64,000 nucleotides of DNA from assembly GCA_009103225.1 (NCBI GenBank), contig RHPI01001737.1, positions 62,001 through 126,000 on the forward strand, read 5' to 3'. Source of the DNA: Chlorokybus atmophyticus. Its lineage: Eukaryota; Plantae; Mesostigma and Chlorokybus algae. This document shows, one piece after another, positions 1-11,311 of this stretch; within the stretch, counting starts at the first letter, position 1; the number at the start of each line of letters is the position of its first letter. A program made the translations under genes and the position numbers. Below the pieces are notes generated by a model. The model had not been told where the DNA came from and searched no databases. It worked only from the letters and a program-made list of their open reading frames with translations.

Positions 1-2557
1 GTGCACACACAGACAGCCAACACAGCTGTATTACCTCCATCTCTAGCTGTGATGCCGCAGCTGCCAACTGTTCGCCAAAGTTCTCCACTAGTGTTGCTTG
101 TGTGGTGCGATCCACTACAATTGCAACCCAGTTTCTGACAGGCTTGCCGGGTTGAATCACTCCCTTGCCGAACATGCTCCAGCTACCAGGCTTTTGAGAG
201 ACCTGGCTGTGACTGTACTGCAGCTGAGGAGGACGCAACACGCGAGCGTTGACCTCCAGCATGTTTGGGTTTACATATACGCCAAACTGCCGCGTGTATC
301 GGTCTGTTTCAAACCGACACTCTCGCACTGTCCTGTCTATGTCTTGCTTGCGCTGGTCTGGTCTCTGCTTCTGCACTTTGAGCATCTCGGCAACCTGCGC
401 ATACAAGTCCGCTTTGACTAAATCTCCCTTAAGACAAGTTGAAGCACAGCAAATGCTTAGCATGAAGGCTGAGTTGCAGGTCTACAAACTCAATGTCAAT
501 CACCTGTCTGGCAGACAGTCTGCCAATATGGCGTTGACCAGCCACGACTTTCAAAACCTGCAAGGGGTACAAGTTGCACCACATGAGCAACCGACCTCAT
601 CGCGAGTGTGTGCGCGCGCGCGCACGTGCGTTTGTGTGTGTGATTTGGCATGTGCACACGATATCACCTCAAGCGGATAGTATTGTGGATTGGCATTGAG
701 TCCCCGAGCTGCATTGGCACATGGCAACTTGGGGTACTTCAGGTCGAGGTTGTAAGTTTTGGAGAAGTATTCCGCCACGGTGCAGGTCCTCTGGACTCCA
801 TTGACATTCAAGACAAACCTGCAAGCATGACGCTCTGTCACAGATGTAAGCTCTCTGCTTGTAACACACAAATGTCGAATAGGTTGTCACGTACGTTTGA
901 TTGTCGGCTGAGTTCGGTGAGAGGCCAGCAATGCGAAATCTACGCTTGATCAGCCCTTGATGCGTGGTTCCCACCTGGACGTTGCACAGGAAATCTTGAA
1001 CGTGCAAGGCATCGCTCCCTTGAATCCCCTTGCGGAGGCTTGCAATTCTGTAGTCCAGAAACTCTGCCACGGCCTCCACCACACCCTGTTCTTTGTAAAC
1101 AGCTGTCGCGGACATATCTGCACAAAGCTAACAAGTTAGATCTCTGGCTTAAATAGGGGCTAAAAGTTACAGAGCTTGGTTGATGTACCACAGAACCAAG
1201 CAACGCTTACCGAGATTGAACGCCAAGCCAGCCTGCACTGGCCGCAAGGACTGGAAGTAGCCGCGACTGTAGCACAAACCGTTGCCTAGAGATCCAAAGC
1301 CAAAGCTTTGGTGGAAGAACAAGGAGCGGCCAAACGACCAGTACTTCTGAGCGGCAGTCATGCGCATCTTCAAATAAGACTCCATGTCAGCTTAGCAATC
1401 AACACGCTCAACATTACATGCAGCGTTGCTACCACCAACTCACCGCAAGGTAGAGACCTTGTAATGCAGGCTGTGGAACATCAGGTCGCTGACCGCGCAG
1501 GTACTCGTCAAGGGCATACATGTTGATTGCAGCAACAAGCTTCAGAGTCACGGTGTACCGCAGTGCGCTCCTGCAGGTAGCAAACTATCAGGAGAGTTCA
1601 TCAATGGACAGCAATCTTAGTTGATGATTGCGAAGCGGGTTCCATTGTGTCACTTACACTTGCTCTGAAGTTGCCGGAATGTCGACCCTCAGCATCAGAG
1701 GAGAAGGTATTGCCTGTGCAGTGTACACGTTGCGGTATCCATCAAAAGCCAACATTGTGTCATCGGCAACCTTTCGGTAGTCGCTGGAGTCCTGCAAGAC
1801 CTGCGCACAGTCACACTGGTCAACTGCACTAGAAGATCGCTGAGCCTTCACCCTACATCATGACGCCTGTATCCGTAGGTGAGTCCAACCTGCACAATTG
1901 CACGCAGCAGCGCCCTGTTGCTAACGCTTCTCTCAACCGGGCCCGCCGCAGCAACAGACACCTGCAAGATAGGCAGAGTACCACACGCTCGTTGTTTGTA
2001 TCCACTCCTCAGTACTCAAGAACCAATTACTTTGCTTAAATTACTACTTTACTTGAACACAACCTAGTCCGTGCAAAGCCTTACGTCGTACTGGTAGACG
2101 GTGCTGTTGGCAATCAGCTCTGCACGGTAGAAGTTTGCAAAGACTTTGATGCTTCTGCCCAGCTTGCCAAACTCGGGCCGTTTTGAGCGCTGTTCCCACA
2201 AAGCCTCTGCCTCCTGCGCAACGTGGTACACGGCTGGTAGTGCACACCATGCAAGTTTTTCGTTTATACGACAACTCGCAGTATAACTTGCTGTAAACGG
2301 CGCATGCCTTGCTGCAACTCTCACAAGCTTGTAAAGCAACCAAGGCAGAGAGTAGTACACAGCAGCATGTTTGCTGAGACACACAGCAACAATCGTGTCA
2401 TACACACCTTGGCTTCGTCATTCTGGTCGGTTGATGAGGACGCTTGTGCTGCATCCACGCCTACGGACTGCCCGGTGGATGTGAGGGGCAATGCTTGAGG
2501 TTGTGCCCAAGTCTGCCCAATTGATCTCTTAGGAGGACTGACTGCTGTTGTACACAT
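1..2557 (-). CDS. AGO: Argonaute, N-terminal half (ArgoN, L1, PAZ, L2, start of MID); multi-exon, runs off the left edge; start codon uncertain
   Basis: Exon peptides: RPEFGKLGRSIKVFANFY...VYQYDV (2064-2250); LAFDGYRNVYT (~1730); GRSLFF...RGYFQSLRPVQAGLAFNL (1210-1330); FRIAGLSPNSADNQT and TVAEYFSKTYNLDLKYPKLPC...YYPLEV (PAZ, 669-960); manually read VNARVLRPPQLQY (~215-255). GT-AG introns separate them. Confidence 0.92.
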
Positions 2558-5363: not shown

Positions 5364-8300
5364 TCACAAGATCTCGCCAACCAGTGGCCTGAAGGAGGTG
5401 CCCGCAAGGCATGCGGCATCGGCTTGAATAGAGAACTCCATGTCGAAGGTTATGTACGGGGCCCCAAAGGCGTATGCATGCACCTCCACAGCCAACACCT
5501 GCCAAACAGGTGCGCACGTGAAGCTTTTCTTCTGTGCATAGTATGGAACTCGAGTGAAAACATGAGATTAAGACATACCTGAGGACCATCAGCTTTGATG
5601 AGGCCCGGTGCGAGAGTGTACGACACGAAGTGGTCACCATTGCCGGGGTTTAGCGCAAATGTGCTGGCGTCGCTGTTGGCGGGCATGTTGACGCGCAACG
5701 CTTGGATGCCATTCAGGTACAGAACCTGAAGGAAGCATTCGCACAGCGACAGAAGTGGCTGCAAGGGCAAATGAGTTGCGAACTGGCACTTACGAAGCTG
5801 TCGAATATGCGAATGTTGGCCCGGTACGTGTGAGCGCATTGGGTACCGGTCAGCGTGAATGTTTTGCGGAAGTATGTAGTGGTCAAGTGCGCGCGAGACA
5901 CGATGGTCTGGTCCGCTGTGGGAAACCGATTGTAGAATCCAAGTGGAGACATGCCTGCACAAGTGAGGTGGTTGGTAATCAAAACATTAAGTCCCTTGTT
6001 TGGGGCATAATTGAAAGCTAGTTGAACTTGTCATAGTCAGCTCACTCACCGACAGACCAACTGGAGTCATCATACGATGGGTCCATCCAGTTGGCCGCTG
6101 GCTGGCCGTCGTCTTTGTAGCTCCAGGCGCTGTACGTCTTGAACACACTCAGGCGACCAGTGCTGGCAAGCAGGTTGGAGAGTGAGTTGACAAACACAAC
6201 ACGCATGCTTGAGATCCCTGCATGCATGTATGCATATATTTCGTGTGATCAAACGTACATAAGGTGCATAGCATTGCAGCAGTGGCTCACCTTTGCACAC
6301 ACAGTGAGTTGGTGCAGGTGGCCGCAACTGTGGCGGTAACGGCGGTCGCCAGCTGGAGGTTGTTGTACTGAGTGATTTTGTGCATTTCCACTGCGAGGCG
6401 GTTGGTGCCGGGCTTGAGCAGCGACGACATGCTGCTGGTGGTTGGGAGCAGGGTCATGTTGATGAGCTTGACAGTACCGGAGTTGTACGTGGGGTTGTTG
6501 ACGGTGGCCCACGTGGTGATGCCAACATTGCCATCGGGCATGTTGAGCCGCACAAGCTCAACACCGTTGAGCCACACCACGGCACCCTGCTGGACAAGAA
6601 CCTGGACATCCAGGGAGGTGATGACAGCACCCGCCGCGCTGTTCACCACAAAGTTCTTGATGAAGTAACCTGTGGGGGACACGTCTCCACCGAGAAAAAC
6701 TTGTCTCATTTGCGTGACCGCTGGGTAAGGCGGGCTAGCGGACGTGGCTATTGGCGCGGGCCCGCTCTCCCATCCCGCCGAGTCCGGCGAAAATGTGGAG
6801 ACGGACTGCCAGTCCGGGACGTCTTCGTTGATGTGCTGATAGTACCATGTAGACTTGAGGGGGACCAGCGCAACTTGTGTTGTATCGGACAGCGCGCGGC
6901 AGGCGCCCTGGTAGCACACCTCACTGTTTGCGCAATCCATGTAGGTTGGGGAGCCGGCAGCTGGCACATCGATGGCGCCGTCGCAGTCGTTGTCTATCCC
7001 ATCGCAGATTTCTACTGCTGGGGATTGTGCGTCGCATGCCAGATACGTGCCATACCTACAGATCTGCTCGTGTGCACGCACGCGTGTCAGTGCGAATATA
7101 TGCATGCACATGGGTGTGTGTGCGTGTGAGTGACCCTATCCACAAGATCAGTTCAGGACAGGACAGCTCGGCCGTCTCACCTGCACGCCGTCGTTGCACC
7201 CAACTTTGCACGGCAGCATTAGAGGGAGGGTTGTACCGGGCTGGTTGTCAATTTTGCCTACCAGATTGGAACAGGCAAGAAGATAGCAGCATTTATTGGC
7301 ATGCTGTTCAACTCATTATAAAACAGAAAACAAAAAGCCAAAACCCAATACACACACACAACTGCATGTGATGCAGTACTAGCGCACCATCCTGGTCGTC
7401 ATCTATGTTGTTACAGGTCTCGTTCACCCATCTCGCAAGGGGCACAACACTTGGTGGCGCCAAGGACGAGGTGGAGACTTGGAAGTAAACCACAATGCGT
7501 GTGGAGGTGACCAGAGACCCTGGGCGCACGATGATGTTGACGACGGCGGCGTTGGAGTCTTCTGGCAGGTCCGGGCTCAGGTCCAGAGGGGTGGGGTCAG
7601 CGGTGATGACGGAAAAGGTGGCATCTGCGGGGGAGAGTATTTGTCCTATCAGCACAATGTTGTCGTCTCCTTGTGTGAGCTGCACGCTGCGGCCGTCGCG
7701 CGCCACCTGCACGGAGGCCCTCGTGTGGAACATCGACACAATGTCCACGCCAGGCGCATTCGCCACAATCTCGTCCTGGATGAACATTGCGCCACCTCCG
7801 CCAGACACATCGTTGAGGAGCATCACACCACGCATGACAGATGTTGCGTTGGGATACGCATCGGAGAGGTCCATGATGGCCTGTGAGCGCGTGTCATCCG
7901 AGTAAGTTGTGGTGATTGGCGCTGTAACGAGCAGCGGCTGGTTGTTGAAGTATAGCGGCTGCTGCTTTGTTGTGCTGATGGCCAACGTGTTGTGTCCTTC
8001 CGTCCGAGCGCGATAGAAAGTGTAGCGAGTATCCTCCCTGAAGTAGTTTGGAATGTCATAGTCGTCGCTGCCGAGATCAATGAGCCAACGCTCGCCGTTG
8101 GTCTCAAATATGACTGAACCCAAGTCCAAGTGCTGCAAGGAGTTCAATCGTGTCAGTGAGGTTTGGCGCATTGACCGCATTGACATGGAGAGTTGAATAT
8201 GACTTGAATGGTGTCTTGTGTGTGCGTGCGCTTGCGCGTGTTGCGCATGCGTATGTGCACGCACGCAGCAGCGCCTTGTTATTAAGTGTTCAGGCTAACC

Positions 8301-10529
8301 TGGTGTGAGGTGAAGTGGTCGGGCGCCTGGCCCGCGCGCATGAACAGGTATCCCGCATTGGAGTCCTGCCACGCTGTCTGGAAGGACACCGTGTCCACTC
8401 TGTAACCCGCATTGTGGCCGGCGAGGGGTGGGAACTTGTCTATATCGAGGCCAGGGCCCCACTGCCAGTTGGAGATGCTTCCCAGCCAGAGTATGCGCCA
8501 CACGCTGCCCGTCCGCCCCAACACGCGCTCTTGCTCGGCCAGGAACTTGTCGTTGAAGCGCTTCGCTGCGTACATTGTCCATTGGCTGGACAGAACAGGC
8601 TCCTGCGCATCTGTCACATTCCAAGGTTGTGAGCTTGTGATCAGACGAAGTACAGGTCAGTCTGCACACGCAGAGTTGTCTTGATTAATGTTTACCTGCG
8701 AAGTTGGCATTCAGGCCTACTGGGGAGAGGGTGTATATGCGGTAGTAGGCGGCGGCATACATGGCAGTGCCATCGCCAAGGATGCCAAAGTCGGTGCCGA
8801 GTGCGGCCTCAAGTGATGACACTGCGAACGCCATGCTCATGCCTGTGTTCGCCAGGTACGTTGTGCCCTCCGTCCACGCCCCGCTCGGATGATACATCAG
8901 CGTCGTCCTCCACACCGACACCAAAGCCCTTCTTAAGATCTGTCCGGTAGAGGTCAAAGCGTTATGGAATGCGTGTGCATTGTGATATTGAGCATTACCA
9001 ACCATACATCATGAATAACATCAAGTACTTACCTGTTCGCAAAGAACAGGATCACGTTCTGCAAATGCAAGAGCAGCCATGACCCAGCCGTACAGGGCAT
9101 TGACACCAATGTTGTTGTTAAGCTGGGCGAGGAAGTCAATGTTGGGCAGTCTGTAGTTGTCTGTTTGCAGAGAAGGCAGGAAGGCCTTGTTGAGGACAGC
9201 ATTCCACATCGCCTGTTAGGTGCGCCACAACATCAGCACATGCAAATATGAGAGCGCTCAACCACTGACGCTTACCGTCTTGTCATTGCTGGAGAGATAG
9301 CCGTTCAGCCAGTCATAAGCATACGAAAGAGCCGCCAGGTACTGTCCAGCTGTCATGTACCCAGGCGAAGGCTTAGCACCAGCTGTCCAGGTATTGTTAT
9401 CCAACGTTGTTATGTACAACGCATAAGCTCGCGCCTTTGCTGCAAGATTTCTGTCGCCATTGATCTGCACACAACACATCAGCGTCACACAATCTCCCTG
9501 TTTCATTGTTCTTTCACTCACTCACCAGGTAAGCGCCGGCCATGATGGCGATGCGGTCCAGGAAGTTGCGCGAACTCAGATCGGTGTTAAGCGTGCCATC
9601 AGATGCAAGCGCGTAGGTGTCGTCGAAGTTGGAGCTGCATATACCTGGCAGCATGCTCTGTGCGGAGTTGGCGGGATCGCACGATGCGCGGACTATCGGC
9701 AGTGTGTCTATGTTCACTATCAGGCGTGGATGCGTACTCCTCAACGTCGCCAACAAATTGCTTGTCGGCAGTGGCGTCCGGCAGTCTACTGCTCCAACAG
9801 GTGTGTAACACTGATCGCGTCCGCTCCATGTTGGATTCGTATTGACAGACAACTGGCAGAGGTAAACTTACATTCAGTTGATGGAACAGCAGGAAGCTGC
9901 AGTGCGCTTGGCATGCATGCATGCCAAGCGCACTTATATACATAACAACCACAGCTGCATGTATCATATCACAATGCATTGGTATTATGACATGTACGGT
10001 GCCTGCGTGTCACTGATACGCATACTATGCATGAGTTGTGTACATGCGCATGTACGCGCCAACCCATGTGCGCGCATGTGCCCGTGCATATGCCTGTGCA
10101 TGCGCGTCATACGTATACATACTCATCATGCATGCAGTGCACATGTTTGCTACTCACCGCTGGCATGGTGTAGTCTTTGCTGCAGGGAGTGATGCCCATG
10201 TACACCGTGCAGTTATCACCGGGTGCGGGTCGGTACGCTTGGACCTGGCACCCGAAGAGGGTCCTGCCGACAGCCTGAGCAAACTCCACGGACGGAAGCG
10301 ACGCTTGCCACATCCCGTCTTGGTCTGTCATCGGCCACCGCTGCACTAGCAAGCTCCCGTCCAAGGCGGTGCATGTGATCTTCATCGCCGCCCCTGCGAT
10401 GGGATACGTCACGCCGCCGTCCTCGGCAGACAGACACGTGTCGCACACCACCCGGCCTGATGCGAGTATCATCTGCGCGGCTGCGGGCTGCAGGAGCAAT
10501 GCCACCAATGCCAGCAGAGACAGTGCCAT
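5364..10529 (-). CDS. Secreted multidomain protein: signal peptide, PAC/Pollen Ole e 1-like Cys domain, heparinase II/III-like polysaccharide lyase, two CxxxD(N/D)DxDG motifs, two bacterial-type beta-sandwich domains; multi-exon
   Basis: MALSLLALVALLLQPAAAQ signal peptide; GRVVCDTC...YPIAGAAMKITC...TDQDG; lyase-like HPRL, GAWTEGTTY, HQ|HLDLGSVIFETNGERWLIDLGSDDY...YRARTEGHNTL; ETCNNIDDDQDG and EICDGIDNDCDGAID; two copies of W.Y...W.....DSSW / YF.K.F / V.LNG....R.NMP / LAVE(M/V)H. Stop TGA at 5364-5366 after PLVGEIL. Confidence 0.8.
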
Positions 10530-11311
10530 CTTGATCTGCTTCAGACAGACAGGTTTGGAGCCCAGTCAGCAAACAAAAGCACATTGCATAGGAACATCCT
10601 TGTTTGTGCAATGCAACCAAATGTTGGGTAAGCATACCTGTTGTTTCATGCTTGTGCACCGATCACTGCTCCCTCCCCTTAGGATTCAATGAAGGGAAGC
10701 AATGCTGCATCTTCGTCGTAGTGAAGCTGCTCACAGGTTTGGTATGAGAGAGGACTGGCAGCATGAAGACGGATATTGTGTAATACAGCTTGTGTCGTGC
10801 TGAGGCTGGCTAACAAAACGTGGCAAACTGATGCAGTGTCACAAATGCGTAGCGTAGCACCATGTATTATGTACTATTGCCCAAACAGAACTCTACGTAT
10901 GGGTAAGACTATCTCCTCAGCTACACATCAAACGGAGAACGAACCAACAGTCGCAACTGAGCATTGCATTGCAACATTCCAGCTAAGCATTGCATGTGCA
11001 ATAGTATTGCAAGGCAGAGGGCTGTCAAGCTGGCGTCCGCATTTTGCCACTTACTCTGGTTGTATGCATGCGCAGGAGTGGCATGGAGACGCACTTGGAG
11101 TTAACGCCTCTGCCTCCGCCTCAGTTGCCAGGTGGTGCACGGCTAGCGTTGTACTCAAAATTGCAGCACAAGGAGAACCGCCTGCTTGCAATGCAGGTGC
11201 GTTGTTTCCGGCCTTGTAGTCTTTGTGGTGTTTTCTGCCCAGTGGCACACACAATTGCATACATCCTGCATCCAGTAGGGGCGTCTATACCTGTCCCTTT
11301 AGTCTAGGCCA

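Follow-up and report, generated by a model that had tools for sequence, protein, structure and literature searches.

A predicted PL35-type polysaccharide lyase of probable bacterial ancestry joined to an Ole e 1 domain in the alga Chlorokybus

Introduction

Characterised polysaccharide lyases (PL) of family PL35 cleave glycosaminoglycans containing glucuronic acid (GlcA), and one of them also cleaves alginate, by a Tyr/His beta-elimination with Mn2+ (PMC12088678, PMC11262172). The glycosaminoglycan lyases of this family that are most relevant here, GAGase II from Spirosoma fluviale (8KHV), GAGase VII from Bacteroides intestinalis (8KHW) and a chondroitinase (9O3Q), are bacterial single-domain proteins of about 600-650 amino acids (aa) encoded by intronless genes. 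Here we describe a gene on the minus strand of a 64,000-nucleotide stretch of the genome of Chlorokybus atmophyticus (assembly GCA_009103225.1, contig RHPI01001737.1, positions 62,001 to 126,000; hereafter the window), the predicted product of which resembles these enzymes in order along the full lyase domain, with the same Asn/Tyr/His triad and the same His/Asp/Asp/His Mn2+ site, although the overall similarity is low. Beyond the lyase, the algal protein has an Ole e 1 domain, MopE-like motifs and two sandwich modules.

The same lyase family also occurs in multidomain heparinase II/III-like proteins of bacteria (P0127, which is RME94134.1, P0007 and P0032 in our searches), which are about 30-40% identical to the algal lyase, and P0127 additionally has the same type of C-terminal sandwich module. 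These bacterial proteins differ from the algal one in their PA14, LamG, Big_7, CBM96 or F5/8 type C domains and type IX secretion system (T9SS) tails, and have neither an Ole e 1 domain nor a MopE-like motif. Plant Ole e 1/PAC proteins (PF01190; pollen allergens and AGP31-type proteins), on the other hand, share with the algal N-terminus the six-Cys pattern, the GRVVCDTC start and an N-terminal secretion leader, but occur as small proteins on their own or in combination with Pro-rich or arabinogalactan protein regions; we found no described fusion between an Ole e 1 domain and a polysaccharide lyase in the literature.

Horizontal transfer has been proposed for several genes of carbohydrate-active enzymes (CAZymes) in streptophyte algae, including GH5_7, GH28, PL1, PL4 and others (PMC11096116). 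The gene described here would follow the same pattern of bacterial-type wall-degrading enzymes that were taken up and given introns, whereas the families listed in that study do not include PL35, the lyase family was found only in Chlorokybus among named eukaryotes (30 checked matches), and the architecture is new. Chlorokybus has an extensive sheath and is without pectin lyases (PMC10762512). Its 'pectin' is composed of GlcA, galacturonic acid (GalA), sulphate and L-galactose (L-Gal), including beta-D-GlcA-(1->4)-L-Gal, and withstands all land-plant wall hydrolases tried (PMC10953000).

Results

One minus-strand gene fills positions 10529 to 5364 of the window, with 13 exons that were placed by reading the sequence. 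In a script check of this gene model, all 12 introns were of the GT-AG type with lengths of 61-305 nt, the exon phases were consistent, the coding length was 3774 nt (1257 codons plus TGA), and the G+C content was higher in exons than in introns, in agreement with the many spliceosomal introns proposed in a first-pass annotation of this DNA. In order, the gene encodes a hydrophobic leader, an Ole e 1 domain with six Cys, a full-length polysaccharide lyase, a pair of MopE-like motifs and two homologous beta-sandwich modules. We consider it probable that the gene is a functional one in the nuclear genome of a Chlorokybus alga and that its product is a secreted polysaccharide lyase of several domains, with about 1257 residues. 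The splice model is based on the genomic sequence, on profile alignment and on comparison with a public gene model; searches used single exons as queries, and the corresponding public protein (P0001) stood in for the full-length product. This protein was the best match of exon 7 in a HMMER search of 1.84 billion representative proteins (2417 matches) and is listed as EukProt/JGI 'Chlat1 7377' from Chlorokybus atmophyticus, with a length of 1225 aa; the strain behind it is now named C. melkonianii CCAC 0220.

Assignment of the lyase domain was based on a profile (A1) of four Chlorokybus paralogues and their twelve nearest relatives. Exons 2-7 aligned on this profile in order, without gap or overlap (profile positions 30-129, 130-185, 187-241, 242-321, 324-411 and 415-641), and this consecutive alignment confirms the domain as a lyase and, for this part of the gene, the splice model. 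Exon 7 matched the Pfam domain Hepar_II_III_C with 37.8 bits (cut-off 24), and a search with exon 7 against all sequences of the Protein Data Bank (PDB) led to three chains only, all of them PL35 (9o3q with an E-value of 1.8e-11, followed by 8khv and 8khw). The same three chains were the only PDB matches of P0001 (1.8e-28 to 2.7e-23), with nearly the whole lyase covered, and profile A1 found the PL35 chains with E-values of 7e-156 to 5e-121, well ahead of a PL15 oligo-alginate lyase (1.4e-36) as the next group and of lower groups with 1.7e-24 and 4e-18, the latter being heparinase II, as well as alginate lyases. By their family labels, these lower groups would be PL12 and PL21 (the 1.7e-24 and 4e-18 groups), PL39 and PL17. 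By sequence comparison, the algal lyase can be placed in the heparinase II/III fold as a PL35-like enzyme.

For GAGase II, mutagenesis defined Asn192, Tyr246 and His401 as the catalytic triad and His403, Asp405, Asp421 and His457 as the residues holding Mn2+ (PMC12088678). All seven residues align with identical residues in the algal lyase (Table 1), and the columns of the Mn2+ ligands are invariant in alignment A1 and in a second alignment, A2. The motifs GAWTEGTTY, HQ/HLDLGS (the stroke marks the exon 6/7 boundary) and RTEGHNTL, from which a heparinase II/III-like region had originally been read, carry the catalytic Tyr, the catalytic His and Mn2+ ligands. Because of this agreement with residues defined by mutagenesis, the enzyme looks catalytically competent.

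The part upstream of the lyase is encoded by a single exon. Exon 1 starts with the leader MALSLLALVALLLQPAAAQ, behind which six Cys are located within residues 29-116, together with the motifs GRVVCDTC...YPIAGA...TDQDG. Exon 1 matched the Pfam family Pollen_Ole_e_1 (PF01190) with 33.7 bits at a cut-off of 23 (E-value 4.7e-08), so that the reading of the six-Cys region as a PAC/Ole e 1 domain also holds at the level of Pfam, and its closest clusters in the ESM-Atlas were streptophyte proteins of the 'Pollen Ole e 1 allergen and extensin family' with 138-156 aa and scores of 0.91-0.93. The coding content of exon 1 is exactly the leader and the Ole e 1 domain; its boundary with exon 2 is in phase 0 on both sides, with GTGAGT and CAG as splice sites. 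The public protein P0001 unites the same domains, as it matched Ole e 1 (28.7 bits) and Hepar_II_III_C in Pfam. Furthermore, an Ole e 1-like domain (5.9e-15 to exon 1) is found at the start of the paralogue P0002, where it is likewise followed by the lyase.

An alternative explanation would be an annotation artefact, with a stand-alone Ole e 1 gene of 140 residues (10529-10107, intron 1 being read through) upstream of a separate lyase gene. The frame of exon 1 indeed stays open for 16 codons past the donor site, with a stop at 10107-10109, and 140 residues would be a typical size for stand-alone Ole e 1 proteins (138-156 aa). However, a TAA 18 nt upstream closes the frame of exon 2, and no ATG lies between this stop and the exon, which leaves the lyase without a start or leader of its own, and the first Met in this frame is found only 67 residues in, beyond the conserved HPRL start of the lyase. 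No other leader-like open reading frame (ORF) was found in intron 1, the exon 1/exon 2 boundary is in phase 0 with good splice sites, and the public models of the window gene and of P0002 both connect Ole e 1 with the lyase. Two separate genes are therefore very unlikely, and the fusion of the lyase to a host Ole e 1 exon is well supported by the public gene model, by the same order in P0002 and by the closed frame upstream of exon 2. Since the paralogues P0004 and P0006 are without an Ole e 1 domain, the fusion is probably an event within a single branch of the family that preceded the divergence of P0001 and P0002.

Phylogenetic analysis placed the five Chlorokybus paralogues (P0001, P0002, P0004, P0006 and P0008; mutual identity below 50%) in one clade with a Shimodaira-Hasegawa-like approximate likelihood ratio test (SH-aLRT) value of 100, on a long stem and inside an otherwise bacterial or metagenomic clade with support of 96-99. 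This nesting among bacterial sequences was observed in all three trees, which are unrooted (midpoint only): tree 1 with 104 rows and 609 columns under a site-heterogeneous model, tree 2 of the C-terminal domain, and tree 3 with 80 taxon-labelled bacterial loci. When one genome per bacterial species was scanned, relatives with about 30-34% identity were detected in at least 546 species genomes, including Verrucomicrobiota, Planctomycetota, Armatimonadota, Chloroflexota and Acidobacteriota. The closest labelled sequences were from a Myxococcales metagenome-assembled genome (MAG; P0007, identical to L014), Kofleriaceae (P0032) and Hymenobacter (P0025), along with sequences with T9SS tails of the Bacteroidota type (P0013 and P0014). 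A donor bacterium is not singled out by these trees; the nearest labelled relatives belong to Myxococcota and Bacteroidota, with weak support for any single sister group. Among 30 of the best 150 matches (2417 in all) for which the source was checked, the five Chlorokybus proteins represent the only named eukaryote.

Reading these trees as a transfer into the alga assumes that the root is off the algal stem, which is parsimonious because the family is broad in bacteria. The reverse, an ancient eukaryotic gene that was lost almost everywhere or that was passed from the alga to bacteria, could draw on the lack of a root, on the length of the Chlorokybus stem (0.45-0.68 substitutions per site) and on two possibly eukaryotic environmental fragments that join the Chlorokybus clade. 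We nevertheless regard it as highly improbable, given the spread of relatives across many bacterial phyla, the single named eukaryote among the sources looked up, the supported bacterial splits that enclose the Chlorokybus clade, and the fact that the characterised members of PL35 are all bacterial. A bacterial origin of the lyase with later intron gain and duplication is well supported by these comparisons. The earlier proposal of a horizontally acquired and intronised lyase fused to a host domain, for which a wall-anchoring role was presumed, is supported by the algal clade nested in bacteria, the five introns in the lyase part and the fusion in both P0001 and P0002.

The two environmental fragments, P0009 and P0011, originate from JGI metagenome 3300059473 (contigs of 7271 and 996 nt) and fall inside the Chlorokybus clade with an SH-aLRT of 98. 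The P0009 contig looks eukaryote-like, with short scattered gene calls and about 50% coding density, and includes, on the same strand, a call of 310 aa that lies 400 nt upstream. The family may therefore also be present in another alga, or the fragments may belong to a Chlorokybus paralogue that is missing from the annotation. A metagenome scan with the Chlorokybus-clade alignment gave three distant loci only and did not return the P0009 contig. No relative was found in a scan of viral contigs, so that there is no sign of a giant-virus route.

The lyase gene is clearly integrated in the host genome, as it has 12 introns (five of them in the lyase), an Argonaute gene as neighbour and an independent public annotation; contamination was ruled out on the same grounds. 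The Argonaute exons are located just downstream of the lyase gene at 2-481 (minus strand; ArgoL2 with 54.5 bits, and ArgoMid), and those at 672-1127 and 2047-2397 (both minus strand) are probably further exons of this kind.

Comparison by tblastn showed 96-100% identity between P0001 and the window exon by exon, some exons differing by 1-4% in amino acids. P0001 begins with MKQQIKM and thus starts six residues upstream of the ATG at 10529, whereas an in-frame ATG is absent from 10530-10550, where the window reads ...CTG AAG CAG ATC AAG ATG. The few substitutions and the different sequence around the start codon suggest that the genome of the window is very close to, but not identical with, the JGI Chlat1 genome, and by its sequence the gene is an orthologue or near-identical copy of Chlat1 7377. 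Two further differences concern splicing. In the public model, the splice from exon 7 ends in the middle of the second MopE-like motif, by which both motifs are merged and the well-formed 77-nt exon 8 (7257-7181) is skipped, and exon 12 begins eleven codons earlier (5758 instead of 5725). The resulting 11-residue extension is an insertion in the conserved sandwich core of the (D)DGA(V/I)VY(L/V)NG type, while the shorter exon aligns without gaps to P0127. Judged by sequence, both differences (7388-7063 and 5758-5726) look like errors of the public annotation.

Table 1. Position of the exons, domains and predicted functional residues of the lyase gene in the window.
Feature	Position	Strand	Basis
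Whole coding region	5364..10529	-	Manual model, 13 exons; public model P0001, tblastn 96-100% per exon
Predicted signal peptide, 19 residues, hydrophobic core then AAAQ	10473..10529	-	Read from sequence
Ole e 1/PAC-type domain, six Cys, exon 1 residues 25-110	10200..10457	-	Pfam PF01190, 33.7 bits
PL35-like polysaccharide lyase (alpha/alpha toroid and beta-sheet domain by sequence match), exons 2-7, five introns	7419..9810	-	Profile A1, PDB matches
Putative neutraliser Asn, exon 4 N34 (N33 before it), corresponding to GAGase II Asn192	9111..9113	-	Invariant N of profile; PMC12088678
Putative catalytic Tyr, exon 5 Y28 in GAWTEGTTY, corresponding to GAGase II Tyr246	8856..8858	-	Alignment to 8khv and profile; PMC12088678
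Putative catalytic His, exon 6 H102 (second-last residue, H-Q/H-L-D), corresponding to GAGase II His401	8303..8305	-	HxHxD motif; PMC12088678
Four putative Mn2+ ligands, exon 7 H1, D3, D19 and H47 (HLD...IDLG...EGHNT), corresponding to GAGase II His403, Asp405, Asp421 and His457	7992..8132	-	Alignment to 8khv
First MopE-like motif (CNNIDDDQDG...), split by intron 7, runs into exon 8	7181..7415	-	Sequence and splice sites
Second MopE-like motif (CDGIDNDCDGAIDV), exon 9	6965..7006	-	Pfam PF11617, 24.1 bits
Beta-sandwich module 1 (W.Y...W...; QGAVVWLNGVELVRLNMP; LAVEMH)	6293..6889	-	Homology to P0127; weak AlphaFold model
Beta-sandwich module 2, exons 10-13	5367..6162	-	Homologous to module 1
Exon 1	10529-10158	-	Manual model
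Exon 2	9852-9526	-	Manual model
Exon 3	9464-9276	-	Manual model
Exon 4	9212-9033	-	Manual model
Exon 5	8939-8696	-	Manual model
Exon 6	8610-8300	-	Manual model
Exon 7	8132-7388	-	Manual model
Exon 8	7257-7181	-	Manual model; 77 nt, skipped by public model
Exon 9	7063-6291	-	Manual model
Exon 10	6162-6050	-	Manual model
Exon 11	5954-5794	-	Manual model
Exon 12	5725-5579	-	Manual model; start at 5758 in public model
Exon 13, ends with TGA	5498-5364	-	Manual model

Downstream of the lyase, both motifs of the CxxxD(D/N)DxDG type that had been noticed at first reading are present in the DNA, the first at 7415-7388 and onward. The second matched the Pfam family Cu-binding_MopE (PF11617) with 24.1 bits, which is under the cut-off of 27. 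None of the 160 other proteins fetched carries a MopE-like motif, and an arrival of these motifs together with the lyase was rejected for this reason.

The C-terminal 400 residues consist of two copies of one beta-rich module, and the two tandem beta-sandwich modules seen initially are hence mutually homologous. The module had no match in Pfam or NCBIfam, a tblastn search of the sandwich against plasmids gave no match, and nothing was found in a search of Rfam. In the ESM-Atlas, sandwich module 1 reached scores of 0.96-0.97 to unnamed bacterial clusters, and the module occurs in 30 unnamed clusters there. A homologous domain is located at the C-terminus of P0127 (residues about 1391-1560), a protein of 1630 residues from a Verrucomicrobiota MAG that further contains PA14, a lyase of the same family, LamG and Big_7. 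The module is apparently a bacterial accessory domain not described before. AlphaFold modelling of the sandwich gave a mean predicted local distance difference test score (pLDDT) of 34 from the single sequence, and an all-beta model with a pLDDT of 51 and a predicted template modelling (TM) score of 0.57 from a 6-row alignment. Foldseek of this weak model led to GH2 beta-glucuronidases/beta-galactosidases, GH86 and CBM35 sugar-binding jelly rolls, all marginal (E-value about 1e-3, TM-score about 0.3), so that 'carbohydrate-binding-like' is a lead for this module and not a result.

In searches for homologous proteins, P0002 returned itself only, and the Ole e 1 exon and sandwich module 1 returned nothing. 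Imperfect CA/CG-rich runs of the CACGCA/GCATGC type were observed in introns 1, 6 and 8 (9960-10150, 8165-8290 and 7075-7150, minus strand), and they cause many spurious short ORFs on both strands.

A literature search found no paper linking Chlorokybus with heparinase, and among papers naming Chlorokybus and polysaccharide lyases none was found describing this gene. The first-pass annotation had assumed an architecture that was yet to be described; this stands as far as papers are concerned, whereas a protein model with the same domains was already public as Chlat1 7377. The gene is therefore already annotated publicly, though unnamed and with no paper found on it, and represents a known enzyme family with a new architecture, in a eukaryote in which it was not expected.

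Discussion

From the profile and PDB matches, the conserved catalytic residues, the phylogeny and the closed frame upstream of exon 2, the following course of events may be proposed. The lyase would have entered the Chlorokybus lineage from a bacterium, after which spliceosomal introns would have been gained and duplication would have led to at least five paralogues. In one branch, the lyase would have been fused via a phase-0 first exon to a host unit of signal peptide and Ole e 1 domain, and the sandwich modules would likewise be of bacterial type. The secreted enzyme is expected to act by metal-assisted beta-elimination at 4-linked uronic acid residues, which would generate an unsaturated non-reducing end, while the Ole e 1 domain and the sandwich modules might hold it on a glycan matrix.

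The least certain step is the substrate, for which the alga's own sulphated GlcA/GalA 'pseudo-pectin' or its sheath is the leading candidate, with a possible role in wall turnover, separation of cell packets or release of zoospores. We favour such an acidic matrix of the alga itself over foreign exopolysaccharide, because PL35 enzymes cut GlcA-containing polymers and the Chlorokybus 'pectin' is acidic, sulphated and resistant to hydrolases. The same protein could also be directed at a foreign substrate, such as bacterial exopolysaccharide, biofilm or acidic glycans of other organisms in the surroundings of this subaerial alga, for nutrition or defence. Its bacterial relatives are secreted degradative enzymes with CBM96, F5/8 type C domains and T9SS tails, the characterised PL35 enzymes have very broad substrate ranges, and the sandwich modules are bacterial-type, all of which would fit this use. 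Still, we consider a foreign target rather unlikely, as the fusion to a streptophyte-type Ole e 1 domain in two paralogues and the presence of at least five copies suit an endogenous role at the wall, and the alga itself makes a polymer of GlcA, GalA and sulphate for which no other degrading enzyme is known. As a tentative suggestion, the Ole e 1-PL35 lyases of Chlorokybus might be the alga's own 'pectinases', a system for wall turnover in which a captured bacterial lyase would be directed to the sulphated GlcA/L-Gal pseudo-pectin by its plant-type Ole e 1 module.

Several points speak against parts of this interpretation. A lyase needs a 4-linked uronate, and action on the pseudo-pectin would presuppose such a linkage of its GlcA or GalA. 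Identity to characterised PL35 enzymes is low, and the placement in PL35 was made by similarity. Retention of intron 1 would give a stand-alone Ole e 1 protein of 140 residues, and the gene may thus have more than one product. The manual and the public model disagree at the exon 7/8/9 junction and at the exon 12 acceptor, and the presence of both MopE-like motifs in the mRNA depends on the splicing of exons 7-9. The fold call for the sandwich modules is derived from a low-confidence model. With regard to the origin of the lyase, the trees have a midpoint root, the sources are known for 30 of the best 150 matches (of 2417 in total), and P0009 and P0011 inside the Chlorokybus clade possibly come from another eukaryote.

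Nevertheless, the gene offers a clear case in which a bacterial CAZyme acquired introns, was duplicated and became linked to a streptophyte Ole e 1 domain, and, as far as found in the literature, it would encode the first described eukaryotic PL35-type lyase. No enzyme is known to act on the 'pseudo-pectin' of Chlorokybus, and this intact, predicted secreted PL35-type lyase family provides a concrete enzyme to express and to try on it. The fusion of Ole e 1 and lyase likewise offers a way to find out which ligands Ole e 1 domains have. Chlorokybus is an early-branching relative of land plants, and if the lyases are indeed its own 'pectinases', early streptophytes would have built their machinery for matrix remodelling independently of the pectin toolkit of land plants, and a role of the Ole e 1 domain in targeting glycans would be demonstrated.

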